Virus record (IMG/VR): IMGVR_UViG_3300028840_008160
Location: 124,001 to 188,000 of that record
Direction: 5' to 3' (one strand)
DNA length: 64,000 nucleotides
Each line of letters opens with the position of its first letter. Positions within the stretch are counted from its first letter, which is position 1. Shown in pieces: positions 20,778-51,082 of the stretch. Under the pieces are notes generated by a model that saw only the letters and a program-made list of their open reading frames with translations, was not told the origin of the DNA and did not search any database. Made by a program: the position numbers and the translations under genes.

Positions 20778-20786
20778 GATGAAAAG

Positions 20787-20875: not shown

Positions 20876-21012
20876 TTGAAAGTGGCGCTTTAGAGCAAGA
20901 CTTCAGAAAAAGTAGCTCAGTTGGTAGAGCGTCAGTTTATTCAACTGAATGTCATGGATTCAAATTCCATCTTTTTTACCTTAAAAGGTTTTGTTCACTT
21001 TCGCCCTTTCAA
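20876..21012 (+). ncRNA. Y-RNA-like RNA 1 (closing stem enclosing a tRNA-like cloverleaf)
   Basis: 5' TTGAAAGTGGCG..GAGCAAGAC pairs with 3' GTTTTGTTC..CGCCCTTTCAA; interior has D, anticodon-like and T arms. Confidence 0.65.
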
Positions 21013-21054: not shown

Positions 21055-21138
21055 ATGACTTCACTGACTTGTAATAGCAATTACTTTACAAGTAGTTTTT
21101 CCAATTACGGAAAAACTGATCAGTGGGGTTTTGCATAG
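21055..21138 (+). CDS. Attenuator leader peptide 1 (MTSLTCNSNYFTSSFSNYGKTDQWGFA)
   Basis: SD GGAAGGA; rich in Asn, AGY-Ser, Phe, Cys codons matching downstream tRNAs. Confidence 0.75.
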   Translation: MTSLTCNSNYFTSSFSNYGKTDQWGFA

Positions 21139-21203
21139 GTTTCTAACTCAAAGCAAAACGAAATTCAAAGCTCCACTGATCTAACGGTCGGTGGGGCTTT
21201 TTT
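21118..21203 (+). terminator. Attenuator 1 antiterminator/terminator
   Basis: 21118-21133 pairs with 21166-21181, which otherwise forms terminator 21167-21203. Confidence 0.8.
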
Positions 21204-21613: not shown

Positions 21614-21701
21614 TGACGAGTAGCCTAGCGGCAAGGCAGTTGGCTGTTAACCAACCGTGACGCAAGTCCAATCGGGGGTTCGAATCCCTCCTCGTCAGCC
21701 A
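21614..21701 (+). tRNA. tRNA-Asn(GTT) with long variable arm
   Basis: gttgg-ctGTTaa-ccaac; 18-nt variable region; CCA. Confidence 0.85.
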
Positions 21702-23948: not shown

Positions 23949-24034
23949 GGGTGAGTAGCTCAGTTGGTCAGAGCGCCGGGCCGTTAACCCGGAGGCCCAT
24001 TGGGATTTCGTGGGTTCGAATCCCACCTTGCCCT
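23949..24034 (+). tRNA. tRNA-Asn(GTT)-like, C33 and long variable arm
   Basis: ccggg-ccGTTaa-cccgg; 17-nt variable region. Confidence 0.75.
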
Positions 24035-24066
24035 CTTTCTACGCAAATAGATATGATTACTATAAC

Positions 24067-26496
24067 ATGTTAGAGATTATAGGGAAACATTCAACTGCTA
24101 AAATAATGGTTGACGAAGTTGAAGATTCGTGCATGACACAAATCAAAAATTTCGTTGATCATCCTGCATTTACTAATCCAATCGCAATCATGCCAGATAC
24201 ACATGCCGGTATCGGATCTGTTATTGGGTTCACTATGAGGTTGACTAATAAAGTAATACCAAATGTTATTGGCGTTGACATTGGTTGTTTTATTAAGTCG
24301 ACAAAAGTTTCTTTAGCTGATGGTCGTGAGTTAACATTTGAACAATTGATCGAAGAACATGACAAAGGTTTGAGAAATTTTTGTTTTTCAAAAGATGACA
24401 AAGGCAATATTGTTATTGAAGAGATTTTTAGTCCTAGAAAAACAAGAACCGTGACTGAGTTAATTGAGATTACATTAGATAATGATGAAGTGATTACGTG
24501 TACTGTTGATCATATTTTTTATGATATTAATTGTCAAGAGGTTAAAGTTAGTGATATTAATAAAGGACAATCGCTTTATCCTTTATATATTGAAAAATCT
24601 GGAACAGTTCAAGATGAATTGTCAAAAATTAGTAAGAAGTTCAAATTACGCGATTATTTAGTCGTGTACAATCCCAAAACATATAAGTATGATTATATTC
24701 ATATTTTAGCTGATGATTATAATTTACGACATCATGTTTATGAAAAATCAAAATCAATTAGACATCACATTGATTTTGATAAACACAACAATAATCCGAC
24801 AAATATTACAAGAATGCAATGGAAAGATCATTTTGTTTTGCATTCAAAACATGCGAAGCAGCAAAATATTAAAGGGAAATCTGGTTGGTCAGCTGCTTGG
24901 AGAAAAAATAAAGATCGTTTTTCTGAGATGTCATCTAAAAAAATGAAAAAATTGCATGAAGATGCTTTGTTTAAAGAAAGATTGAAAATTAGAGCTAAAA
25001 CAAATAGAAAAAAATATCTAGAATCAGATGCTTTTTATGAAATGACTAGAGATGCAGGTAATAGAGGAAAAAAATATCTTGTTGCATATTCAAAATCAGA
25101 AAAAGGTAGGAACAAATCATCTGAGATTGGCAGGAATGTAGTAAATCAAAAATATCGTTGTTCTATTTGTAATAAGACAATAAAAAGTGCACGGGCATGC
25201 CCTAATCATTTTAACAGAAAAGATCATAAGCAATGTAATTTGAATATGTCTGATATGATATTGTTAAAAAATCACACAGTAAAAAGTATAAAGCGAATTA
25301 GTTGCGAGCCAACAGATGTGTATTGTTTTACGACTAGATTTAGTAATTTTGCATTAGCATCAGGTGTGTTCGTTCATAATTGTGGCATGTTGTCTATTAA
25401 CATTGGTAAAACTTTGCCGATATCGTTAGAGGATTTTGATACAAAAATTCGTCAGAGAATTCCGTTTGGGCAAGAAGTGCATGATGAAGCAGTTATTCGT
25501 ATGGATACGGACTTTCCATGGAAAATTGCAATAAGTAAAGCTGAAGCATTTGCTGCAGCGTTTCGCGAATCTTATAGAGATATCAGTGTTCCAAGATATT
25601 GTATGGACTGGTTTCTTGAAAAATGTGATACTATTGGTGGTGGAGCAAGACGAGTAATTAATTCATTAGGAACACTTGGCGGAGGAAATCATTTTATCGA
25701 AACTGGTGTTTCAACAACAGGTGGTGATTACTGGATTACTATACATTCTGGGTCAAGGAATTTTGGATTAAAAGTTTGTAATTACTGGCAAAGTATTGCA
25801 GCTAAGTCTTTCAAAAAAGAAAGAACTGGAAAGATTCAAGAGCAAATAGAAGAAGCAAAACGTACTCTTGAAGGAAAAGAGTTGTACGATAGAATTAAAG
25901 AAATTAAACGGTCAACATCAACAAGAGGTATTGACATAACACATCTTGAATGGTTGGAAAATGAAGTCGCTGATGGTTATTTATTTGATATGATATTTGC
26001 TCAATTGTATGCTAGTGTTAATAGATCATATATGGCTAAGTTGATTTGTGATGTACTTGGAGTAGAAATACAAGATTCGATTGAGTCTATTCATAACTTT
26101 ATAGATTTTAATGACTTCATCATTAGAAAAGGTGCTATTAGTTCGTATATTGGTGAACCAATGATTATACCATTTAATATGCGTGATGGTATACTTATTT
26201 GTGAAGGAAAATCGAACAAAGAATGGAATTATTCTGCGCCTCATGGTGCAGGCAGATTGATGAGCAGAACTCAAGCAAATAAACGAATTGATTTAGACAC
26301 ATTTAAGAGTCAAATGAACGGGATTTTTTCTACATCAGTGTGCAAGTCGACATTGGATGAAGCACCGGATGCTTATAAGAGTTCTACAATGATAGAGCAG
26401 GCTATTGAACCAACAGCTGCGATTTTAAACAGGATAAAACCAATTCATAATATGAAAGATTCAAGTGAGTTTCAATTTAGAAGAAAGAAGCAATAA
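24067..26496 (+). CDS. rtcB: RtcB RNA ligase containing an intein
   Basis: MPDTHAG, GVDIG|CG, GTLGGGNHF, HSGSR, HGAGR, DEAP.AYK; ATG 24067. Confidence 0.93.
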   Translation: MLEIIGKHSTAKIMVDEVEDSCMTQIKNFVDHPAFTNPIAIMPDTHAGIGSVIGFTMRLTNKVIPNVIGVDIGCFIKSTKVSLADGRELTFEQLIEEHDKGLRNFCFSKDDKGNIVIEEIFSPRKTRTVTELIEITLDNDEVITCTVDHIFYDINCQEVKVSDINKGQSLYPLYIEKSGTVQDELSKISKKFKLRDYLVVYNPKTYKYDYIHILADDYNLRHHVYEKSKSIRHHIDFDKHNNNPTNITRMQWKDHFVLHSKHAKQQNIKGKSGWSAAWRKNKDRFSEMSSKKMKKLHEDALFKERLKIRAKTNRKKYLESDAFYEMTRDAGNRGKKYLVAYSKSEKGRNKSSEIGRNVVNQKYRCSICNKTIKSARACPNHFNRKDHKQCNLNMSDMILLKNHTVKSIKRISCEPTDVYCFTTRFSNFALASGVFVHNCGMLSINIGKTLPISLEDFDTKIRQRIPFGQEVHDEAVIRMDTDFPWKIAISKAEAFAAAFRESYRDISVPRYCMDWFLEKCDTIGGGARRVINSLGTLGGGNHFIETGVSTTGGDYWITIHSGSRNFGLKVCNYWQSIAAKSFKKERTGKIQEQIEEAKRTLEGKELYDRIKEIKRSTSTRGIDITHLEWLENEVADGYLFDMIFAQLYASVNRSYMAKLICDVLGVEIQDSIESIHNFIDFNDFIIRKGAISSYIGEPMIIPFNMRDGILICEGKSNKEWNYSAPHGAGRLMSRTQANKRIDLDTFKSQMNGIFSTSVCKSTLDEAPDAYKSSTMIEQAIEPTAAILNRIKPIHNMKDSSEFQFRRKKQ
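24286..25380 (+). mobile_element. Intein with HNH endonuclease domain in RtcB
   Basis: Starts CFIKSTKV, ends GVFVHN before Cys+1; internal HHIDFDKHNNNPTNI. Confidence 0.9.
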
Positions 26497-27177: not shown

Positions 27178-27449
27178 ACTGTGTAATCTGCGAACGCGAG
27201 GTACCGGGTGAACGGTTTCTTGAAAAGCATCATTTGATTCCAAAATGTGGCAAGGGAAAAGACACTGTAAAAGTATGTGTTGATTGCGGTGATCAGATTC
27301 ATGTATTATTTACTGAAAAGGAACTACGAGACATATACAATACAGTTGAAAAGTTGAAATCAAATGAGCGAATGCAGAAGTGGATTAGATGGATTCAAAA
27401 AAGACCAACATTTGGTACTGTTTGTATGAAAAGAAAAAAGCGCCTATAG
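27174..27449 (+). CDS. Small HNH-family protein
   Basis: CVIC, HHLIPK, CVDC. Confidence 0.7.
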   Translation: MNCVICEREVPGERFLEKHHLIPKCGKGKDTVKVCVDCGDQIHVLFTEKELRDIYNTVEKLKSNERMQKWIRWIQKRPTFGTVCMKRKKRL

Positions 27450-27511
27450 TTCAGTGGTAGAACAACGGTCCCTAAAACCGTGTGTCGTGGGTTCAAATCC
27501 CTCTGGGCGCA
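27440..27511 (+). tRNA. Amber-suppressor-like tRNA (CTA)
   Basis: acggt-ccCTAaa-accgt; cloverleaf with one T-stem mismatch. Confidence 0.7.
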
Positions 27512-31460: not shown

Positions 31461-31589
31461 ATGCAAACTCCAAGAATCCATACAGCTTCGCTTATAAAGC
31501 ATGTACATGCAGCTGTCATGGTCTTGTCCTCATTATCATGGCTACTCGAAGGAGAAGGTTATGATAAAACGAGGGCAGGTGGGGTTTGA
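31461..31589 (+). CDS. Attenuator leader peptide 2 (MQTPRIHTASLIKHVHAAVMVLSSLSWLLEGEGYDKTRAGGV)
   Basis: Contains cognate codons for 19 of 21 elongator anticodons in operon 2. Confidence 0.75.
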   Translation: MQTPRIHTASLIKHVHAAVMVLSSLSWLLEGEGYDKTRAGGV

Positions 31590-31654
31590 TGGAATAAACG
31601 AAACGATCTGAAAATCAAACCCCGCCGATCCAAAAGATCGACGGGGTTTTTTTT
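31578..31654 (+). terminator. Attenuator 2 antiterminator/terminator
   Basis: GGTGGGGTTTGAT (31578-31590) pairs with ATCAAACCCCGCC (31614-31626), the left arm of terminator 31617-31654. Confidence 0.8.
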
Positions 31655-34799: not shown

Positions 34800-34885
34800 T
34801 TTAAGGAGGAATGAAATGAGAGTTAAGCTATGTCCTACACAAGTTTTTGATGGCCGAATATGCATGACAAATCAATGTTATGTAT

Positions 34886-34958
34886 AGGGGCATAGCTCAG
34901 GGGTTAGAGCGACGGCCTTAAGCCGTGTCTGTCGTGGGTTCAATTCCCACTGCCCTCA
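34886..34958 (+). tRNA. tRNA-like RNA with 5-nt anticodon loop (CTTAA)
   Basis: Normal D and T arms; acggc-cttaa-gccgt. Confidence 0.6.
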
Positions 34959-35008
34959 TTGTGAAAACTATGAAATCAATAGCATACAATTCTCTAAAAG
35001 GAGATTGT

Positions 35009-36732: not shown

Positions 36733-36845
36733 TTTAGACTTAAATGATCTCATTTGATATAATTTGGAGGTGCAGAATGTTTAACAAACGGTACAAACGA
36801 AAACGAAAGACATTCTGCCCGTAGTCGTGATGGCTACGGGCTTAT

Positions 36846-36927
36846 GGGCTCGTGGCCAAGTGGTAGCCGAAAGGCGAAGGCAACGGACTTAATCCGTGGA
36901 TCGGGGGTTCGAATCCCTCCGGGCCCA
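36846..36927 (+). tRNA. tRNA-like RNA with 5-nt anticodon loop (CTTAA) and D-loop hairpin insert
   Basis: acgga-cttaa-tccgt; GCC-GAAA-GGC inserted in D loop. Confidence 0.6.
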
Positions 36928-36948
36928 TTAACTTTGGAAAGATTCATA

Positions 36949-37395
36949 ATGGATAAACCGATATTAGGCTTTTTTGGTGAGTACAGGTTCCTTTCAAATT
37001 TTCATTTATGCGAGATTGTTTACAAAGGAATAACATTTCCTAGTACTGAACACGCGTTTCAAGCTGATAAGGCTACAAATGAAGAATTAAGACAATATAT
37101 TGCTGATCTACCTACATGTAGAGCAGCGAAAAAGGCAGGCGGAACAATTGACCTTCGTGCTCATTGGGAAACTGATAAGATTCAAGTAATGATCGACATT
37201 ACTAGAATAAAATATCAGATACCAGAACTTAAAGAAAAATTACTTGCTACTGGGCAAGCATATTTAGAAGAAACAAACACATGGAATGATAAATTTTGGG
37301 GTGTTTGTAATGGTGTTGGACAAAATCAACTCGGTAAGACATTAATGCAAGTGCGATATGAATTAAGATGGATTGGTCAAGACAAATATACTTGA
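36949..37395 (+). CDS. NADAR-family (YbiA-like) protein
   Basis: FLSNF, STEHAFQA.K, LLATG, D.FWG, G.NQLGK.LM.VR. Confidence 0.9.
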   Translation: MDKPILGFFGEYRFLSNFHLCEIVYKGITFPSTEHAFQADKATNEELRQYIADLPTCRAAKKAGGTIDLRAHWETDKIQVMIDITRIKYQIPELKEKLLATGQAYLEETNTWNDKFWGVCNGVGQNQLGKTLMQVRYELRWIGQDKYT

Positions 37396-41052: not shown

Positions 41053-41169
41053 ATGAAAAACTTAACGCAGACATATCATTTTATATCAAGGCCTGATGCG
41101 CAGGTCAGTGATATGGACATGCGTCAAGTCACCTGTGCCGCAACAACAATTAGAAACGGAGCGACATAG
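41053..41169 (+). CDS. Attenuator leader peptide 3 (MKNLTQTYHFISRPDAQVSDMDMRQVTCAATTIRNGAT)
   Basis: SD GAGGA; has cognate codons for all 12 tRNA species in operon 3. Confidence 0.78.
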   Translation: MKNLTQTYHFISRPDAQVSDMDMRQVTCAATTIRNGAT

Positions 41170-41234
41170 GTAGGGTTTGGAATCAAAATTATTGAATTTC
41201 AAGCCCTGCCGAGGAAACTCGACGGGGCTTTTTT
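41169..41234 (+). terminator. Attenuator 3 antiterminator/terminator
   Basis: GGTAGGGTTTGGA (41169-41181) pairs with TTCAAGCCCTGCC (41198-41210), left arm of terminator 41201-41234. Confidence 0.8.
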
Positions 41235-45934: not shown

Positions 45935-46690
45935 ATGAGACTAATCACTTTGCTTCTATTGTTAATTTCTTGTACTACTATATCTGAATTTACAAATGTA
46001 TCTGTTACAAACAATTCAGCAGACAATGTGCAATGTTTTTTAACTGTTCCTGGTGGTGATAGTCCTATTGGAAAATTTGGTATTTCTTCAGATAGTATTA
46101 AACCTGGTGGAACAACAGGTTGGTTTTGGTTAAAAAAAGGTCAAACAGCAAATTTGAATAGTACCAAACCAGCTATGGGTTATATAATCACTTTTGGAGA
46201 TCAGAATCAAAATTGTTCTCAGGCAATAGCTAATGGTTGGCCGACAGGAATAAATAATTTTGAGTTTACAATTAATTGCTGGGACAAAACATCAAATCCC
46301 AGTGCAACTGGTGGGAATGAATCTGCAGATATTACAAATGTTGACGGTGTCAACGCAATCATTGGTTATTCTGTTGATACTACTTCGAGTGTGGGAAGAA
46401 AATATTGGGATTATTCTCTTACAGATGATTCTGGAAAACTTTTAATGTTTGAATCTGTTAAGAATAGCGGAGAATTATTTGGTGATTGTAATGTGCCCGG
46501 AATCTTTCCTTATGATTGTGATGTTTGTTATACTCATTCTATAGATGCACCAAAACCTTGCTTTGAGTTTCCAAAAGATTACAAATGTTCTGATTCGCTT
46601 GCGCAGGGCAAACTATATACTTGTCAGATTAACCGGCCAGGGCAAGGTGGCACAATTAAAGTTGAGTTTTTTGGATTTATTCAAAAATAA
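45935..46690 (+). CDS. Exported Cys-rich lipoprotein, possibly thaumatin-like
   Basis: LISC lipobox-like; VTNN, FEFT, ADITNVDGVNA echo thaumatin motifs. Confidence 0.5.
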   Translation: MRLITLLLLLISCTTISEFTNVSVTNNSADNVQCFLTVPGGDSPIGKFGISSDSIKPGGTTGWFWLKKGQTANLNSTKPAMGYIITFGDQNQNCSQAIANGWPTGINNFEFTINCWDKTSNPSATGGNESADITNVDGVNAIIGYSVDTTSSVGRKYWDYSLTDDSGKLLMFESVKNSGELFGDCNVPGIFPYDCDVCYTHSIDAPKPCFEFPKDYKCSDSLAQGKLYTCQINRPGQGGTIKVEFFGFIQK

Positions 46691-46699
46691 GTTAAAAAG

Positions 46700-46720
46700 C
46701 TACGACTATTTACATGATTA
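46700..46720 (+). promoter_or_regulatory. Promoter-like motif heading tRNA operon 4
   Basis: ctacg-actatttac-atgatta. Confidence 0.65.
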
Positions 46721-46768
46721 TTAAACTACGGATTGATAATCCTTTGATATTTAATCTAATGACAGAAA

Positions 46769-46860
46769 TTGAAAGTGGTGCTTAGAGGAAAACTTCAGAA
46801 TAATAACCTATCGCTAATTGGTAATTTGTTTCTCGTTTTCTTCGATCATCACCCTTTCAA
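46769..46860 (+). ncRNA. Y-RNA-like RNA 3 (minimal, no tRNA domain)
   Basis: TTGAAAGTGGTG..GAGGAAAAC-TTCAGAA pairs with GTTTTCTTC..CACCCTTTCAA. Confidence 0.6.
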
Positions 46861-46882
46861 ATTCTTATAAAGGAACAAAATC

Positions 46883-46945
46883 ATGGTATACGCAAATAAC
46901 ATTCGCCGACCCCAGCCGCAACAACCACGGAGATTGTATGCATAG
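46883..46945 (+). CDS. Attenuator leader peptide 4 (MVYANNIRRPQPQQPRRLYA)
   Basis: SD AAGGA; run CGC CGA CCC CAG CCG CAA CAA CCA CGG matches all downstream anticodons. Confidence 0.82.
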   Translation: MVYANNIRRPQPQQPRRLYA

Positions 46946-47006
46946 GTGAGGTTGTCGAATTTAATGACTCGAAAAAGAGCCTCACCAAAAATGAGGCTCT
47001 TTTTTT
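46945..47006 (+). terminator. Attenuator 4 antiterminator/terminator
   Basis: GGTGAGGTT (46945-46953) pairs with AGCCTCACC (46978-46986); terminator 46972-47006. Confidence 0.82.
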
Positions 47007-47024
47007 ATGCTCTTTGACAATTAA

Positions 47025-47101
47025 CGGGATGTAGCGCAGTCTGGTAGCGCACTTGGTTTGGGACCAAGGTGTCGGAGGTTCAAATCCTCTCATCCCGACC
47101 A
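47025..47101 (+). tRNA. tRNA-Pro(TGG)
   Basis: cttgg-ttTGGga-ccaag; CCA. Confidence 0.94.
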
Positions 47102-47105
47102 TTAC

Positions 47106-47180
47106 TGGCCCGTCGGCAAGCGGTAAGCCTCTGGGTTTTGGTCCCAGCATTCGGAGGTTCGAATCCTTCCGGGCCAGCCA
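47106..47180 (+). tRNA. tRNA-Gln(TTG)
   Basis: ctggg-ttTTGgt-cccag; CCA. Confidence 0.92.
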
Positions 47181-47187
47181 AACATTT

Positions 47188-47264
47188 CGGGGTGTAGCGC
47201 AGCCTGGTAGCGCATCTGCTTTGGGAGCAGAGGGTCGGAGGTTCAAATCCTCTCACCCCGACCA
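47188..47264 (+). tRNA. tRNA-Pro(TGG)
   Basis: tctgc-ttTGGga-gcaga; CCA. Confidence 0.94.
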
Positions 47265-47270
47265 ATTTAA

Positions 47271-47411
47271 TGGAGGAGACATGAGGTTCAAGTCCTCATT
47301 CATCTGAATCTTACTACTGGTCTAGAACAGCTGGTAGGAGCAACTTTGGCGATAACGTAAAAGCCTTGGAAGTTAAGATGATCGTTCAACTGGCAAAGGA
47401 TACCTTCGCCA
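47271..47411 (+). ncRNA. Permuted tRNA-like RNA with large insert
   Basis: T-arm first, TCATCT/AGATGA stem enclosing about 80 nt, then D-arm-like segment; ends pair. Confidence 0.5.
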
Positions 47412-47416
47412 TTTAC

Positions 47417-47492
47417 TGGGGTGTAGCTCAATTGGTAGAGCATCGGCCTTTGGAGCCGAGTGTTGTTGGTTCAAATCCAACCACTCCAGCCA
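47417..47492 (+). tRNA. tRNA-Gln(TTG)
   Basis: tcggc-ctTTGga-gccga; CCA. Confidence 0.92.
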
Positions 47493-47511
47493 AAATATAT
47501 TAGGAGAAAAA

Positions 47512-47757
47512 ATGAATCAGATCGACAATTGTTGGTTGAAAGATATGGAAGGTTGTGATTTAGAATGTGGTGATCATTGTGGATATTATAAGTTTTTGCA
47601 AGTGATGAAAGATTTAATCAATAATTGGAGAGAAAGTTCAGAACATGCTAATCGTAATAATGACGAGCAAGCAGCTGGAATATTTCAATTATGTGCTAAC
47701 GAATTAGAATGTTCTTTGAAAACTGGTAGTGATAAAGTAGAACGCATTGGGGTATAG
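47512..47757 (+). CDS. Hypothetical protein
   Basis: SD AGGAG. Confidence 0.55.
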   Translation: MNQIDNCWLKDMEGCDLECGDHCGYYKFLQVMKDLINNWRESSEHANRNNDEQAAGIFQLCANELECSLKTGSDKVERIGV

Positions 47758-47823
47758 TTCAATTGGTAGAACGCCTGACTCTGGATCAGGAAGTCTGAGG
47801 TTCGAGTCCTCATACCCCAGCCA
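47748..47823 (+). tRNA. tRNA-Gln(CTG)
   Basis: cctga-ctCTGga-tcagg; CCA. Confidence 0.93.
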
Positions 47824-47831
47824 TAAATTAT

Positions 47832-47908
47832 GCCCGCGTAGCTCAATTGGATAGAGCGTCTGGCTACGGACCAGGAGGTTGAGGGTTCGAATCCTTCCGC
47901 GGGTGCCA
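47832..47908 (+). tRNA. tRNA-Arg(ACG)
   Basis: tctgg-ctACGga-ccagg; CCA. Confidence 0.93.
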
Positions 47909-47915
47909 TATTTTT

Positions 47916-47992
47916 CGGGCAGTGGCGCAGTCTGGTAGCGCACTTGAATGGGGTTCAAGGGGTCGGAGGTTCAAATCCTCTCTGCCCGACCA
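47916..47992 (+). tRNA. tRNA-Pro(GGG)
   Basis: cttga-atGGGgt-tcaag; CCA. Confidence 0.93.
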
Positions 47993-48007
47993 TTTTTGAG
48001 AATTATT

Positions 48008-48361
48008 ATGCAAAGTTTACACGGGTTAAGCCGAAACAAGTTATATGTTGATGATCCGCATGTGCAATCGCATGCAGCATTGTCTTTATTGGTGACCAAA
48101 TTAGGTGAAGAAAGTCATAAAGAATGGCTGACATTTCGAGTAAAATATTTAAGTCAATTCGAATCATTAGTTTGCCATTATTGTGGAAAAGAAGGATTGT
48201 TAATTGAAACTGATGATGAAGAGCATCTTGCTACCGTTGATCATGTAGTTCCATTGTCGAAAGGTGGAGCCGAATTTGATCCTGAAAATTTAGTTGTGGC
48301 TTGCCTTTCGTGCAATGGTAACAAGAAAGACAAGGATTATGATCGATATACGAACGATTAA
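48008..48361 (+). CDS. HNH endonuclease
   Basis: [26 protein letters not shown]. Confidence 0.85.
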
Positions 48362-49325
48362 AAACGGCTATTGGTGGGATTCTATTGGCAAATTTGATGC
48401 GTTAGTTAATAACGAATTGTCGTTAAGAGAATTAACTATGCAAATAACTGATAGATGCAACATGAATTGTATTAAATGTAATAAGCGAAATTTTACATTT
48501 GAAGATATGAAATCTGAAGATGTTGTTAGAATCATAAACGAATCATGTGATCTAGGGCTAAAGCATATTCATTTTACTGGAGGCGAGCCAACACTGCATG
48601 CTGATTTTGTTGATTTTGTCAAATTATGTAGAAGTAAAGATTTACGAATAGACATGTCTACGAATGGTATGTTTAATTATGAAATGGGTAAGTCATTAGT
48701 TGATGCAGGTATTAATTCAATAAATGTTTCATGGGATTACATAGACAAAGAACCTGAATGTATCAGCTTTATCGGTGACTTTCCAATTAAAGTGTTTTTG
48801 AATCATATGGTGATACCAGATAATTATGATAAGTTGTGTGATTTTTTACTTCATGTGTTTAATTTGAAGTTCATTGAAGATATTCAGTTAATGCCGCCAA
48901 GAGGAGATGCGCAAAAGTTCACAAAAGAACAAATTAATGATTTTTGTCAAGCAGTTGATAAATCACATGTCTTAAGTAGATCTATTGTATCAGGCAAACG
49001 TCGTTTTCCAATGGTTGCTTATAAGATTTGTGATCTTTTAACTGATAGTGAGGCAGATAAAGGTATTTATCATGAACGAATAAGTTGGCCATGTCATAGG
49101 TCAAAAGCTGAATTACGAGTCGGTTGCAAAGGATTTGTAACATGTACTTATTTATATCGTGATGGTCATATTACATGTGGTTTAGATCATTCGGTAAAAG
49201 ATGCATGGGAAAAGTGTATGATTGAATGTGAATCTATACCACCTGTAAAACATATGTGTGATTTTAGTTGCAGTCCTGAAGTATGTTATTTCAATTATTT
49301 TGTTGAGAATAGAATGCCCTCGTAG
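48339..49325 (+). CDS. Radical SAM protein
   Basis: CNMNCIKC, FTGGEP, STNG. Confidence 0.88.
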   Translation: MIDIRTIKNGYWWDSIGKFDALVNNELSLRELTMQITDRCNMNCIKCNKRNFTFEDMKSEDVVRIINESCDLGLKHIHFTGGEPTLHADFVDFVKLCRSKDLRIDMSTNGMFNYEMGKSLVDAGINSINVSWDYIDKEPECISFIGDFPIKVFLNHMVIPDNYDKLCDFLLHVFNLKFIEDIQLMPPRGDAQKFTKEQINDFCQAVDKSHVLSRSIVSGKRRFPMVAYKICDLLTDSEADKGIYHERISWPCHRSKAELRVGCKGFVTCTYLYRDGHITCGLDHSVKDAWEKCMIECESIPPVKHMCDFSCSPEVCYFNYFVENRMPS

Positions 49326-49392
49326 TTCAATTGGATAGAGCACTAGATTCCGAATCTAGAAGTTGGAGGTTCAAATCCTCTCGAGGGTGCCA
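49316..49392 (+). tRNA. tRNA-Arg(CCG)
   Basis: ctaga-ttCCGaa-tctag; CCA. Confidence 0.92.
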
Positions 49393-49467
49393 CGGGGTAT
49401 AGCTCAGTCTGGTTAGAGCGCTGCGTTCGGGACGCAGAGGTCGTCAGTTCAAATCTGACTACCCCGA
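49393..49467 (+). tRNA. tRNA-Pro(CGG)
   Basis: ctgcg-ttCGGga-cgcag. Confidence 0.93.
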
Positions 49468-49511
49468 TTATCTTCGATTTAATGCATGATTATCATTCAA
49501 AGAGGTTAAAT

Positions 49512-50903
49512 ATGTCAATGGAAAAACTCTACGAATCGCTTCACAGACGTTTACGTCCCGAAGATGTCGCAGAACTTATTTTAAAAGTTTTGCACCCTAA
49601 TCTGACACGTTCTGAACGTGATGAGCTTAATAAAATCGCTAAGCATTCATTAAAGCGCGGAATGTATTCGTTTACTTCAATGGCTCAAGATTTTCATTGT
49701 GCTATTGCACCTGATCGCCAAGTAAAGAAAGCAAAGGAGTTGTTTGAAACTGCATATAAAATTGATTGTACTGACCCTGAAGCAGTACTTGCGTTGATTC
49801 GTACTATTTCCAAAGAGATAGAGAAAACTGTCGGTAAAGGTGATTTCAAAGACGACAGAATGAATCGCGAAGCACGTAAATCACATGGACTTGACATTTC
49901 TCGTCGTCGGTATAACAAATTGTTCAGATTTCTTGGCAGATTTGAACAAAAAGTTGAGAAGTATGTGTTTGAAATGCGCAAAGAACGTGCTACACGCGTT
50001 TCAAAATCGGGTCTTGCGTTTAAAGTTTCCGAGAAAGATTTTATGAAGTCAAAAGAAGCAGCATGCTTTGTTGCTTATTTTACTGCAAGAAAGAATCGCA
50101 GAAGTGTATTTACTAATTCATCGCAAGATCGTGCATATGATAATTTGTCAAAACTTTTATTGAACAAATTTAAATCAAATCCTTGTCGAGCAGGTTGGCG
50201 AATTATAGCTAGAGTGATGCCTGATGCTGAAATTGTTGCAAAATTAACAAAGAAAGACAAGATGGAATTGTTTGCGACATGGATTGATGTTCTTAATGAC
50301 ATTGCTGATATGCTTAAGACTGTGTGGTTGGGTAGCCGGTTCAATCGAGAAACTATGGTTGTTTCTCGCGGTGATGATTCAAGCACATGGAATTCTTTGG
50401 CTGGCGCATGGAACACTGCACGTCAAGGATGGTTCAGTCTTGTTTATGCTCTTGGCATGGATAAGATGCTTGAAACTGTTTGTTTTGGTAAGGTTATGAG
50501 ATTGATGGCTGCTGATGTTGTTCGTTGGCATCAGTCAAGTGGTGGTCAACTTGAGCCTGATACTTTGGTATGGGCCACATTACCAGCTCCATGGGAAGTC
50601 TTTTCGGGCGAAAAAGAATGTTCAAAGCAAATAGTTGAAGGTGTTTGCAAAAAGAATAATGTTGATCCTGTTCGAAAGAATTGGATAATGCCAATTAAGT
50701 CAAGATCAGCTGTTGAATTTAAACCGACGCCTGAACTTGTTCATGGTGTAACAGTGTCGCATCCAGGGTTGGCTAATATTCTTAAGAAAGCTGGATGGTT
50801 TTCTGGAAAGCAAGCTGTTCCAGTTTCAGAAGCAGTTGTAGTTGATCATGATGAACATGGAGCAGTTGTAGGAGCAAACTTTGCAAATGCGTCGTCGATA
50901 TAG
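49512..50903 (+). CDS. Basic helical protein of unknown function
   Basis: SD AGAGG; promoter-like motif at 49472; stop codon lies inside the following tRNA-like gene. Confidence 0.75.
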   Translation: MSMEKLYESLHRRLRPEDVAELILKVLHPNLTRSERDELNKIAKHSLKRGMYSFTSMAQDFHCAIAPDRQVKKAKELFETAYKIDCTDPEAVLALIRTISKEIEKTVGKGDFKDDRMNREARKSHGLDISRRRYNKLFRFLGRFEQKVEKYVFEMRKERATRVSKSGLAFKVSEKDFMKSKEAACFVAYFTARKNRRSVFTNSSQDRAYDNLSKLLLNKFKSNPCRAGWRIIARVMPDAEIVAKLTKKDKMELFATWIDVLNDIADMLKTVWLGSRFNRETMVVSRGDDSSTWNSLAGAWNTARQGWFSLVYALGMDKMLETVCFGKVMRLMAADVVRWHQSSGGQLEPDTLVWATLPAPWEVFSGEKECSKQIVEGVCKKNNVDPVRKNWIMPIKSRSAVEFKPTPELVHGVTVSHPGLANILKKAGWFSGKQAVPVSEAVVVDHDEHGAVVGANFANASSI

Positions 50904-50966
50904 CTCAGTGGTAGAGCGCACGGCTCTTGGACCGTGTGGACGCTGGTTCGAGCCCAGCTGTCGACG
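50894..50966 (+). tRNA. tRNA-like RNA with 8-nt anticodon loop (CTCTTGGA)
   Basis: cacgg-ctcttgga-ccgtg; normal D and T arms. Confidence 0.6.
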
Positions 50967-50975
50967 CTATACTAT

Positions 50976-51047
50976 GACCTTGTAGCTCAGCGGTAGAGCT
51001 GTCGGCTCCTAACCGACTGGACGCTGGTTCGAGCCCAGTCAAGGTCA
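50976..51047 (+). tRNA. tRNA-like RNA, CCT anticodon, paralogous to 50894
   Basis: gtcgg-ctCCTaa-ccgac; same variable loop and T arm as neighbour. Confidence 0.65.
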
Positions 51048-51048
51048 C

Positions 51049-51082
51049 AAAATCGAGCAGTCAAAAACTGCTCGATTTTTTT
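51049..51082 (+). terminator. Intrinsic terminator
   Basis: AAAATCGAGCAGT-caaaa-ACTGCTCGATTTT then T-run. Confidence 0.85.

Follow-up and report, generated by a model that had tools for sequence, protein, structure and literature searches.

A leader reading frame matched codon by codon to downstream tRNA genes suggests ribosome-mediated attenuation within a jumbo-phage tRNA array

The last of the four units of a large phage tRNA array is headed by a short leader reading frame containing a codon run that corresponds to the tRNAs encoded just downstream, followed by alternative RNA helices that end in an intrinsic terminator. We propose, with a probability of about 0.75, that this element (attenuator 4) works by ribosome-mediated attenuation in which the supply of the downstream-encoded tRNAs would be sensed, so that the phage tRNA blocks would be placed under negative autoregulation. 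For attenuator 4 we infer translation of the ORF, termination, and control by stalling from the nucleotide sequence and from folding and footprint models. The window, which is the whole 64,000-nucleotide stretch of DNA analyzed here, is part of the 329.8-kb uncultivated jumbo-phage contig IMGVR_UViG_3300028840_008160 (= Ga0180438_10000088), and coordinates given without a contig name refer to this window.

ARAGORN identified 56 tRNA genes in the window, on the + strand throughout and located between 20.9 and 51.0 kb, interspersed with small ORFs and with genes for homing endonucleases, radical-SAM proteins, and an intein-containing RtcB, and with replication genes on either side of the array. 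The 56-tRNA array is divided into four units, and attenuator anatomy heads each of them. Several of the tRNA genes are unusual. The tRNA at 20906-20980 bears the anticodon ATT, two 87- to 88-nt tRNAs with the Asn anticodon GTT (21614-21701 and 23949-24035) have long variable arms (type II body), and 27440-27511 and 34885-34959 encode suppressor tRNAs (anticodons CTA and TTA). The lengths of the ORFs within the window did not indicate any recoding of stop codons. Leaders 1, 3, and 4 terminate with TAG, and ribosomes might in principle pass the leader TAG and cross the terminator if the CTA suppressor were expressed. A partial tRNA match (Rfam, 37.9 bits) was located at 36863-36920, inside a NADAR-domain ORF (36844-37395), and a phage tmRNA (53241-53851, Rfam 102.7 bits) has a group I intron match (94 bits) overlapping its 3' end. 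The RtcB RNA ligase, interrupted by its intein, is encoded at 24010-26496 within tRNA unit 1, and homologues of Thg1 and PTH2 are present in related contigs; the combination of RtcB, Thg1, and PTH2 homologues points to an extensive phage toolkit for tRNA repair.

Conserved motifs precede the leaders. The sequence GCTACG-N10-TGATTA was found upstream of all four window leaders (near 20785, 31343, 41013, and 46700) and also upstream of the attenuator 4 homologues in the phage contigs L068, L189, and L191, with 20 to 160 nt between the motif and the leader ATG. Another conserved sequence, AAGTGGYGCTTWAG, occurs 10 to 20 nt before tRNA or degenerate tRNA-like sequences, with sites at 46773-46788 and 20876-20892 in the window, about 1765 and 2027 in L189, 8060 in L014, 6731 in L066, and 4786 in L191. 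A second conserved box, CCCTTTCAAWTTCTTATAA, immediately precedes the leader Shine-Dalgarno (SD) sequence of unit 1, unit 4, and L189. The latter two sequences may be promoter or processing signals.

The array also encodes a highly conserved 473-aa protein that lacks a Pfam domain; together with a tRNA-like gene it occupies 49482-50967 of the window. In almost every case one or two odd tRNA-like genes, whose anticodon loops have 8 nt (cttg, cttt, ctta, cgtt, ctcc, and others), directly follow it, and the same pair was found in L014 (10001-11456), L016 (1631-3101), L017 (10001-11402), and many of the contigs L026-L055. Members of the protein family are distributed among phages plus bacteria such as Myxococcus and Microcystis. 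The protein and the tRNA-like RNA look like a dedicated enzyme/RNA pair. When compared with cultured phages, neither a tblastn search with the 473-aa protein nor a distant blastn search with the leader region gave a match, and the megablast matches in 50,697 cultured-phage records were to individual tRNAs only.

The leader ORF of attenuator 4 (Table 1) is bounded upstream by an in-frame TAA at 46868-46870, and its codons 8 to 16 constitute the regulatory codon run, which has a GC content of 74% versus 35% for the phage genome. The next nine tRNA genes (47025-49467) encode, in order, Pro TGG, Gln TTG, Pro TGG, Gln TTG, Gln CTG, Arg ACG, Pro GGG, Arg CCG, and Pro CGG, and by standard wobble rules the run provides a cognate codon for each of the seven distinct anticodons (7/7). 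The first-pass annotation, made from the letters and their reading frames, had claimed that a nine-codon run covers all anticodons of nine downstream tRNAs, and both its coordinates and the ARAGORN list agree with that claim. It had also described the block as containing no other tRNA; the nine tRNAs are as it listed them, but the unit continues with a tRNA-like cttg gene and Arg-CCT. Besides the nine tRNAs, the unit has four ORFs, the tRNA-like gene at 50894, and Arg-CCT at 50976 ahead of its terminator at 51049; interspersed among its tRNA genes are an 81-aa ORF, an HNH endonuclease, a radical-SAM protein, and the 473-aa protein. The tenth codon, AGA, has its reader, Arg-TCT, in the preceding unit. 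The 150-nt gap between a Pro-TGG and a Gln-TTG gene (47265-47416) contains an 8-codon ORF (47281-47307) that has a very strong SD (GGAGGAG) and whose start is spanned by a hairpin.

Table 1. Positions of the putative attenuators and their parts in the window, and related elements in other phage contigs
Feature	Position	Strand	Description
Attenuator 1 (W1)	21055..21199	+	leader MTSLTCNSNYFTSSFSNYGKTDQWGFA at 21055-21138, TCNSNYFTSSFSNY; terminator 21168-21199; downstream Phe, Phe, Asn, Ser(GCT), Cys, Asn
Attenuator 2 (W2)	31461..31648	+	42-codon leader at 31461-31589 with HVH and WLLEGEGYD; terminator 31618-31648; downstream His, Leu, Leu, Asp, Trp, Gly, Tyr, Glu, Glu, Gly, and more tRNAs
Attenuator 3	41053..41230	+	leader at 41053-41169, ends DMDMRQVTCAATTIRNGAT; terminator 41201-41230; tRNAs Met, Thr, Thr, Ile, Ile, Ala x3, Asp, Arg, Met, Arg, Val
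GCTACG-N10-TGATTA, candidate promoter of unit 4	46699..46720	+	conserved motif; putative promoter function
Shine-Dalgarno AAGGA of leader ORF	46870..46874	+	8 nt before ATG, read from sequence
Attenuator 4 leader ORF	46883..46945	+	ATG to TAG, 20 codons plus stop, encodes MVYANNIRRPQPQQPRRLYA
Region 1 ATTCGCCGACCCC	46901..46913	+	pairs with 46948-46960 of region 2 in ribosome-free RNA; part of MFE
Regulatory codon run	46904..46930	+	CGC CGA CCC CAG CCG CAA CAA CCA CGG
Region 2	46945..46960	+	antiterminator strand GGTGAGGTT at 46945-46953; 46948-46960 pairs with region 1
Intrinsic terminator, regions 3 + 4	46971..47006	+	14-bp stem, 7-nt loop, T7
Region 3 AGCCTCACC	46978-46986	+	terminator 5' arm; pairs with 46945-46953
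Putatively regulated unit	47025..51048	+	nine tRNAs, then tRNA-like gene (cttg) and Arg CCT, with ORFs between
Plain terminator closing unit and entire array	51049..51079	+	without antiterminator partner
L189, attenuator 4 homologue			leader MNFRINIRRPNQQPRRNTV; region 2 identical to that of the window, terminator differs by a compensatory pair
L068, attenuator 4 homologue			leader MMLINRINRQPQPQRPGDFIRL; then Pro, Pro, Gln, Arg, Pro, Gln, Gln, Arg
L191, attenuator 4 homologue			leader ...NNRQPQPQRPGGLIRQ; then Gln, Pro, Pro, Arg
L014 element			leader TSNNTSNCTCSFCFNS; then Phe, Ser-GCT, Cys, Thr-CGT
L017 element			homologue of attenuator 3
L044, first element			leader IDTDIIDAIAADAANAAPD; then Ile, Ala, Ile, Asp
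L044, second element			leader RHRNIRHEEREHGERH; then Arg, His, Glu
L066 element			weaker case; leader-tRNA match p 0.8

The match between codons and tRNAs was evaluated in three ways. Stop-free 9-codon windows on the + strand with tRNAs downstream were scored by the number of their codons read by the next nine tRNAs; among 18,583 such windows, the attenuator 4 codon run was the sole one to reach 9/9, and the best outside its leader scored 7. For the whole attenuator 4 leader in comparison to phage codon usage, the binomial p was 2.8e-5. With the peptide fixed and the synonymous codons drawn by phage usage, all seven anticodons (7/7) were covered in 0.08% of the draws (p = 8e-4), which argues for a leader that samples isoacceptors, beyond the amino acids alone. 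Ten-residue runs made from three amino acids number about 14 on the + strand of the window. The low complexity of the run is not rare; the unusual thing is its match to the tRNAs.

These codon choices bear on a second possible signal, in which the same attenuator hardware would respond to starvation for amino acids (Pro, Gln, and Arg pools), with the phage reading host nutrition and adjusting its tRNA output. Stalling reports aminoacyl-tRNA, and sequence alone cannot tell the two signals apart; the anatomy of attenuator 4 fits both equally well, and the classical relatives are all read as amino-acid sensors. In Salmonella, lowered tRNA-His (hisR mutants) derepresses the his attenuator, and such a sensor responds to tRNA abundance. 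We consider the starvation signal unlikely, given that extra tRNA is no cure for starvation and hence the regulatory logic would be poor, that eight different codons cover seven isoacceptors at the p value given above for the fixed peptide whereas classical leaders repeat one or two, and that the leaders follow tRNA gene content and no biosynthetic pathway. A related leader in L014 also speaks against it, with three of its four Thr codons being ACG, the only codon read by the downstream Thr-CGT.

Beyond the coding sequence, the RNA of attenuator 4 was predicted to form the three helices described in the first-pass annotation, with energies of -17.9 kcal/mol for the 1:2 hairpin, -16.1 kcal/mol for the 2:3 hairpin, and -18.4 kcal/mol for the 3:4 terminator. 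The three are mutually exclusive and comparable in energy. The 2:3 duplex was calculated at -16.8 kcal/mol, with a z of -4.1 versus dinucleotide shuffles of the upstream segment, and the region as a whole folded better than shuffles (z -3.2). The free RNA favours 1:2 plus 3:4 at -36.9 kcal/mol, compared with -25.2 kcal/mol for the best 2:3-containing fold. The terminator position was likewise as first proposed, with the stem at 46971-47005 plus T7 and the T-tract near 47006. The start of region 2 is the last base (G) of the TAG, and region 2 would therefore be covered by a terminating ribosome and free when the A site is in the run; this placement and the footprint model described below agree with the earlier suggestion that a stalled ribosome would block region 1 and free region 2.

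The T-tract is separated from the first tRNA (tRNA-Pro, 47025) by 18 nt, a gap in which no promoter-like site was found on the + strand, and the tRNAs would therefore be transcribed only via terminator readthrough. This spacing argues against the possibility that 3:4 simply ends the upstream operon as an ordinary terminator, that the tRNA genes behind it have a promoter of their own, and that the short ORF and the pairings arose by chance. A terminator after a 251-aa gene would be unremarkable and, as noted, runs of three amino acids are common enough, but the codon run is a unique 9/9 match and ordinary terminators do not have the upstream complement. The latter point was quantified from the energy of the duplex with the upstream segment relative to that of the terminator: the ratios for seven ordinary terminators were 0.27-0.88 with z values of about 0, versus 0.79-1.17 with z values of -1.9 to -6.2 for the 12 elements of the family, the value for attenuator 4 being 1.17. 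The terminator that closes the array (51049-51079) gave a ratio of 0.56-0.63 and a z of about 0. In an unbiased scan of the window for strong terminators that have a complement upstream and lie within 40 nt of a tRNA, exactly the four attenuators were recovered; the unit-closing terminators (27520 and 51051) and the other window terminators were without an upstream complement. The same design is present in the four paralogues of the window plus eight elements elsewhere, and three other contigs conserve the Pro/Gln/Arg run as well as the region-2 core GTGAGG and the terminator. With these results taken together, we regard an ordinary terminator as a very remote explanation and favour attenuation.

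The scoring of 9-codon windows also drew attention to the leaders of attenuators 1 to 3. In these attenuators, a strong terminator is located 28 to 31 nt past the stop codon and is followed by a tRNA within 27 to 38 nt, and a G-rich segment at the stop codon is complementary to the terminator 5' arm. The leader-tRNA codon match is weaker for attenuator 2 (p 0.1) because its tRNA set is large. Certain leaders include residues without a cognate tRNA in their own block, such as Tyr in attenuator 1 and Asn in the L014 element.

Eight further elements were found in seven other uncultivated phage contigs, reached via homologues of two genes, that for the 473-aa protein of the array and the Metallophos gene that precedes attenuator 4. 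Three of the eight are attenuator 4 homologues (L189, L068, and L191), each located behind the same Metallophos gene and with leaders that include RRPNQQPRR and RQPQPQRP. An AGGA-type SD was present 7 to 11 nt upstream of the leader in nearly all 12 elements, and among all loci fetched a complement to the terminator accompanied essentially every strong terminator directly before a tRNA. In L068 and L191, the antiterminator covers no more of the terminator than the loop and the top two to three stem pairs. Two additional contigs are syntenic, with L024 ending 35 nt before the attenuator 4 position and L016 ending just after it. The Pro/Arg/Gln block of L036 had no terminator or leader within the 212 nt present. 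The upstream 251-aa protein was rejected as a route to relatives; its homologues occur in unrelated contexts without tRNAs, and the gene is therefore mobile. Pattern searches of IMG/VR were also performed. A family-wide DNA pattern matched only the window's own contig, and a pattern specific to region 2 and the terminator of attenuator 4 matched only itself, with 16 further attenuator 4-pattern matches in GC-rich actinobacterial and other genomes dismissed as chance. Back-translated RxPQPQxP gave at least 120 chance matches in GC-rich phages, and among the matches listed none was followed by tRNAs. The design appears to be common to several uncultivated jumbo-phage lineages from sediment, water, and soil metagenomes.

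The availability of a family allowed the correspondence between leaders, tRNAs, and helices to be assessed by permutation and co-variation. For ten leaders and ten tRNA sets, the sum of the true pairing was 28.9 versus a permuted mean of 7.4 (p <= 5e-6), and the true score was equalled only by permutations that swapped two elements with identical tRNA sets. For 11 upstream segments and 11 terminator arms, the diagonal of the cross-duplex matrix was -201 kcal/mol versus a permuted mean of -138 (p <= 5e-6), and the own upstream segment was the best partner in eight of the 11 elements. In every element the sequence of region 2 closely repeats that of region 4 (the terminator 3' arm), and 108 of the 133 region 3 stem positions pair in both structures. 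When attenuator 3 was compared with its L017 homologue, a C-to-U and a U-to-C change in region 3 were both matched in region 2, and the first of these changes was matched in region 4 as well, providing a three-way compensation. Among the four attenuator 4-type homologues, eight pairs of the 1:2 helix are invariant, so that this helix is conserved without variation, the 2:3 helix has seven invariant pairs and one compensatory pair, and the 3:4 terminator has one compensatory pair; the helices of these four sequences are nearly invariant, and the shuffle control gave 130/500. The 1:2 protector helix is less clear in some other family members. The contigs of three independent DNA sequencing runs showed zero differences over the stretch from attenuator 3 to attenuator 4, and therefore offered no micro-variation for testing the pairing; the locus was found in no RNA run. 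The comparisons suggest that support for the structure comes from the wider family and not from the attenuator 4 subfamily.

The strongest structural signal, the mimicry of region 4 by region 2, needs no ribosome in itself, and the helices might instead constitute an RNA-only or factor-dependent switch that regulates termination or tRNA-precursor processing, with the ORF untranslated or its codons irrelevant and with a protein, a small RNA, temperature, or polymerase speed as the trigger. Such a switch would leave unexplained the enrichment of each leader for codons of its own block, the SD and start codon before each run, and the fact that region 2 always lies at the stop codon and the run stops just short of the occlusion point. 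On these grounds we judge it improbable and prefer a mechanism in which ribosomes translate the leader. In 12 of the 12 elements the antiterminator strand lies between -24 and +11 nt around the stop codon, and the distance from the stop codon to the terminator stem ranges from 21 to 37 nt.

The consequences of this geometry were explored with a footprint model in which a 30-nt mask was applied at each A-site position and the transcript was folded before the terminator 3' arm was made. For all 12 elements, the terminator 5' arm was predicted to be held by region 2 for A-site positions up to the end of the run and to be freed at the last four to nine codons or at the stop. By full-length equilibrium folding, stalling on the run of attenuator 1 cut the predicted terminator probability from 97% to 0-23%, and equilibrium folding with the masked footprint gave a sharp fall on stalling for L068 and L191. 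In attenuator 4, the equilibrium calculation lowered the terminator probability modestly, from 95% to 61-83%, and the switch would therefore have to rely on the order of co-transcriptional folding, as in the trp paradigm.

In the mechanism that we propose, transcription would begin upstream and the 20-codon leader would be translated while RNA polymerase advances. If the Pro, Gln, and Arg isoacceptors are all adequate, the ribosome would reach the TAG and cover region 2, allowing the 3:4 terminator to fold and the transcript to stop at the T-tract near 47006. Scarcity of any one of the seven isoacceptors would stall the ribosome within the codon run, where it would sit on region 1 and leave region 2 free to pair with region 3 once the latter is made; the terminator would not form, and the polymerase would enter the nine-plus tRNA genes. 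The new tRNAs would relieve the stall, resulting in a negative feedback that acts as an OR gate over isoacceptors and sets the tRNA supply. Without a ribosome, 1:2 plus 3:4 would be favoured, leading to termination. The leader of each of the four units would be tuned to the tRNAs of its own unit. The scheme cannot work if transcription takes place in a nucleus-like compartment or if the polymerase ignores intrinsic terminators.

A broader interpretation, which we offer tentatively and at slightly less than even odds, is that the four attenuators together make up a modular, codon-resolved tRNA homeostat in which a block would be transcribed only if at least one of its own isoacceptors is short, so that the array would serve as an inducible counter-measure to tRNA depletion. 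Shortage might have several causes under such an interpretation, including an AT-rich host that is poor in the isoacceptors, degradation of host tRNAs by the phage, or cuts by a host anticodon nuclease. The reason that phages carry tRNAs is debated, with codon-usage matching, host tRNA turnover, and escape from tRNA-cleaving defences all under consideration, and the control of tRNA genes by phages is largely unknown. If the proposal is correct, a leader that checks every isoacceptor once and controls access to the genes of the same tRNAs would represent a direct supply-and-demand controller. It would open to reporter-scale study the response of phage tRNAs to depletion, the identity of host-limiting isoacceptors, and the behaviour of attenuators as multi-input OR gates, and it might find use as a compact natural sensor of individual tRNA levels and as a rule for annotating the transcription units of huge-phage tRNA arrays.

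The mechanism is a classical one; the regulated target and the one-codon-per-isoacceptor design appear to be undescribed. No description of leader-peptide attenuators before tRNA genes, whether phage or cellular, was found in the full-text literature searched, in which one 'tRNA operon' match proved irrelevant. To our knowledge, this would be the first known case in which attenuation regulates tRNA genes and the regulated gene itself yields the molecule that is sensed. The array itself resembles those of phages T4, T5, and KVP40 and Stenotrophomonas phage RAS14 in having many same-strand tRNA genes among small ORFs and homing endonucleases. We know of no attenuator reported for these cultured-phage tRNA clusters, and when the 30-kb tRNA region of RAS14 was analyzed with the same script, no strong terminator with an antiterminator was found before a tRNA; such elements are therefore not a general property of tRNA-rich phages.

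A search of the whole window at Rfam gathering thresholds returned tRNAs, a tmRNA, and a group I intron only, and no known leader family. The Thr_leader model (RF00506) aligned over its full length (1-118) to 46897-47006 with 34.4 bits and an E of 3e-5, a score that does not reach the gathering threshold of 55 bits. Attenuator 4 shares with Thr_leader a long protector hairpin plus a terminator, but its regulatory codons specify Pro, Gln, and Arg versus Thr and Ile, and several model pairs are non-standard in the match. We conclude that the match is an architectural resemblance and not membership. T-box riboswitches are similar to the proposed system in using transcription antitermination that responds to a specific tRNA state to control translation-related genes. 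A T-box binds uncharged tRNA directly via its specifier loop and T-box motif and needs no ORF, whereas sensing by attenuator 4 would be carried out by a translated leader; T-box matches were found neither in the window at the gathering threshold nor within 46650-47030 at E <= 10.

The closest likeness is to the enterobacterial attenuators. Attenuator 4 possesses six sequence-level features of such an element: an ORF with a ribosome-binding site, regulatory codons, a terminator, an antiterminator, a protector, and a suitably placed stop codon. As in trpL, hisL, thrL, leuL, pheL, and ilvL, a short SD-led ORF contains clustered regulatory codons; the protector 1:2, antiterminator 2:3, and terminator 3:4 overlap and have similar energies; the stop codon is positioned to let a terminating ribosome mask region 2; and the U-tract lies just before the first regulated gene. 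Attenuator 4 differs from these systems in that the genes under its putative control encode tRNAs and not biosynthetic enzymes, so that the sensed molecule would be the product, in that its run combines codons for three amino acids and assigns a different codon to each isoacceptor, with no single-codon repeat, and in its location in a phage, where a family of paralogues partitions one tRNA array. A functional parallel is provided by E. coli pheST, the phenylalanyl-tRNA synthetase genes controlled by an attenuator with the pheM leader. Both would represent leader-peptide attenuation of a translation component, in which codon decoding capacity feeds back on the machinery that serves it. The pheST attenuator is cellular and controls a synthetase in response to one amino acid, whereas attenuator 4 is viral and would control the tRNA genes themselves.
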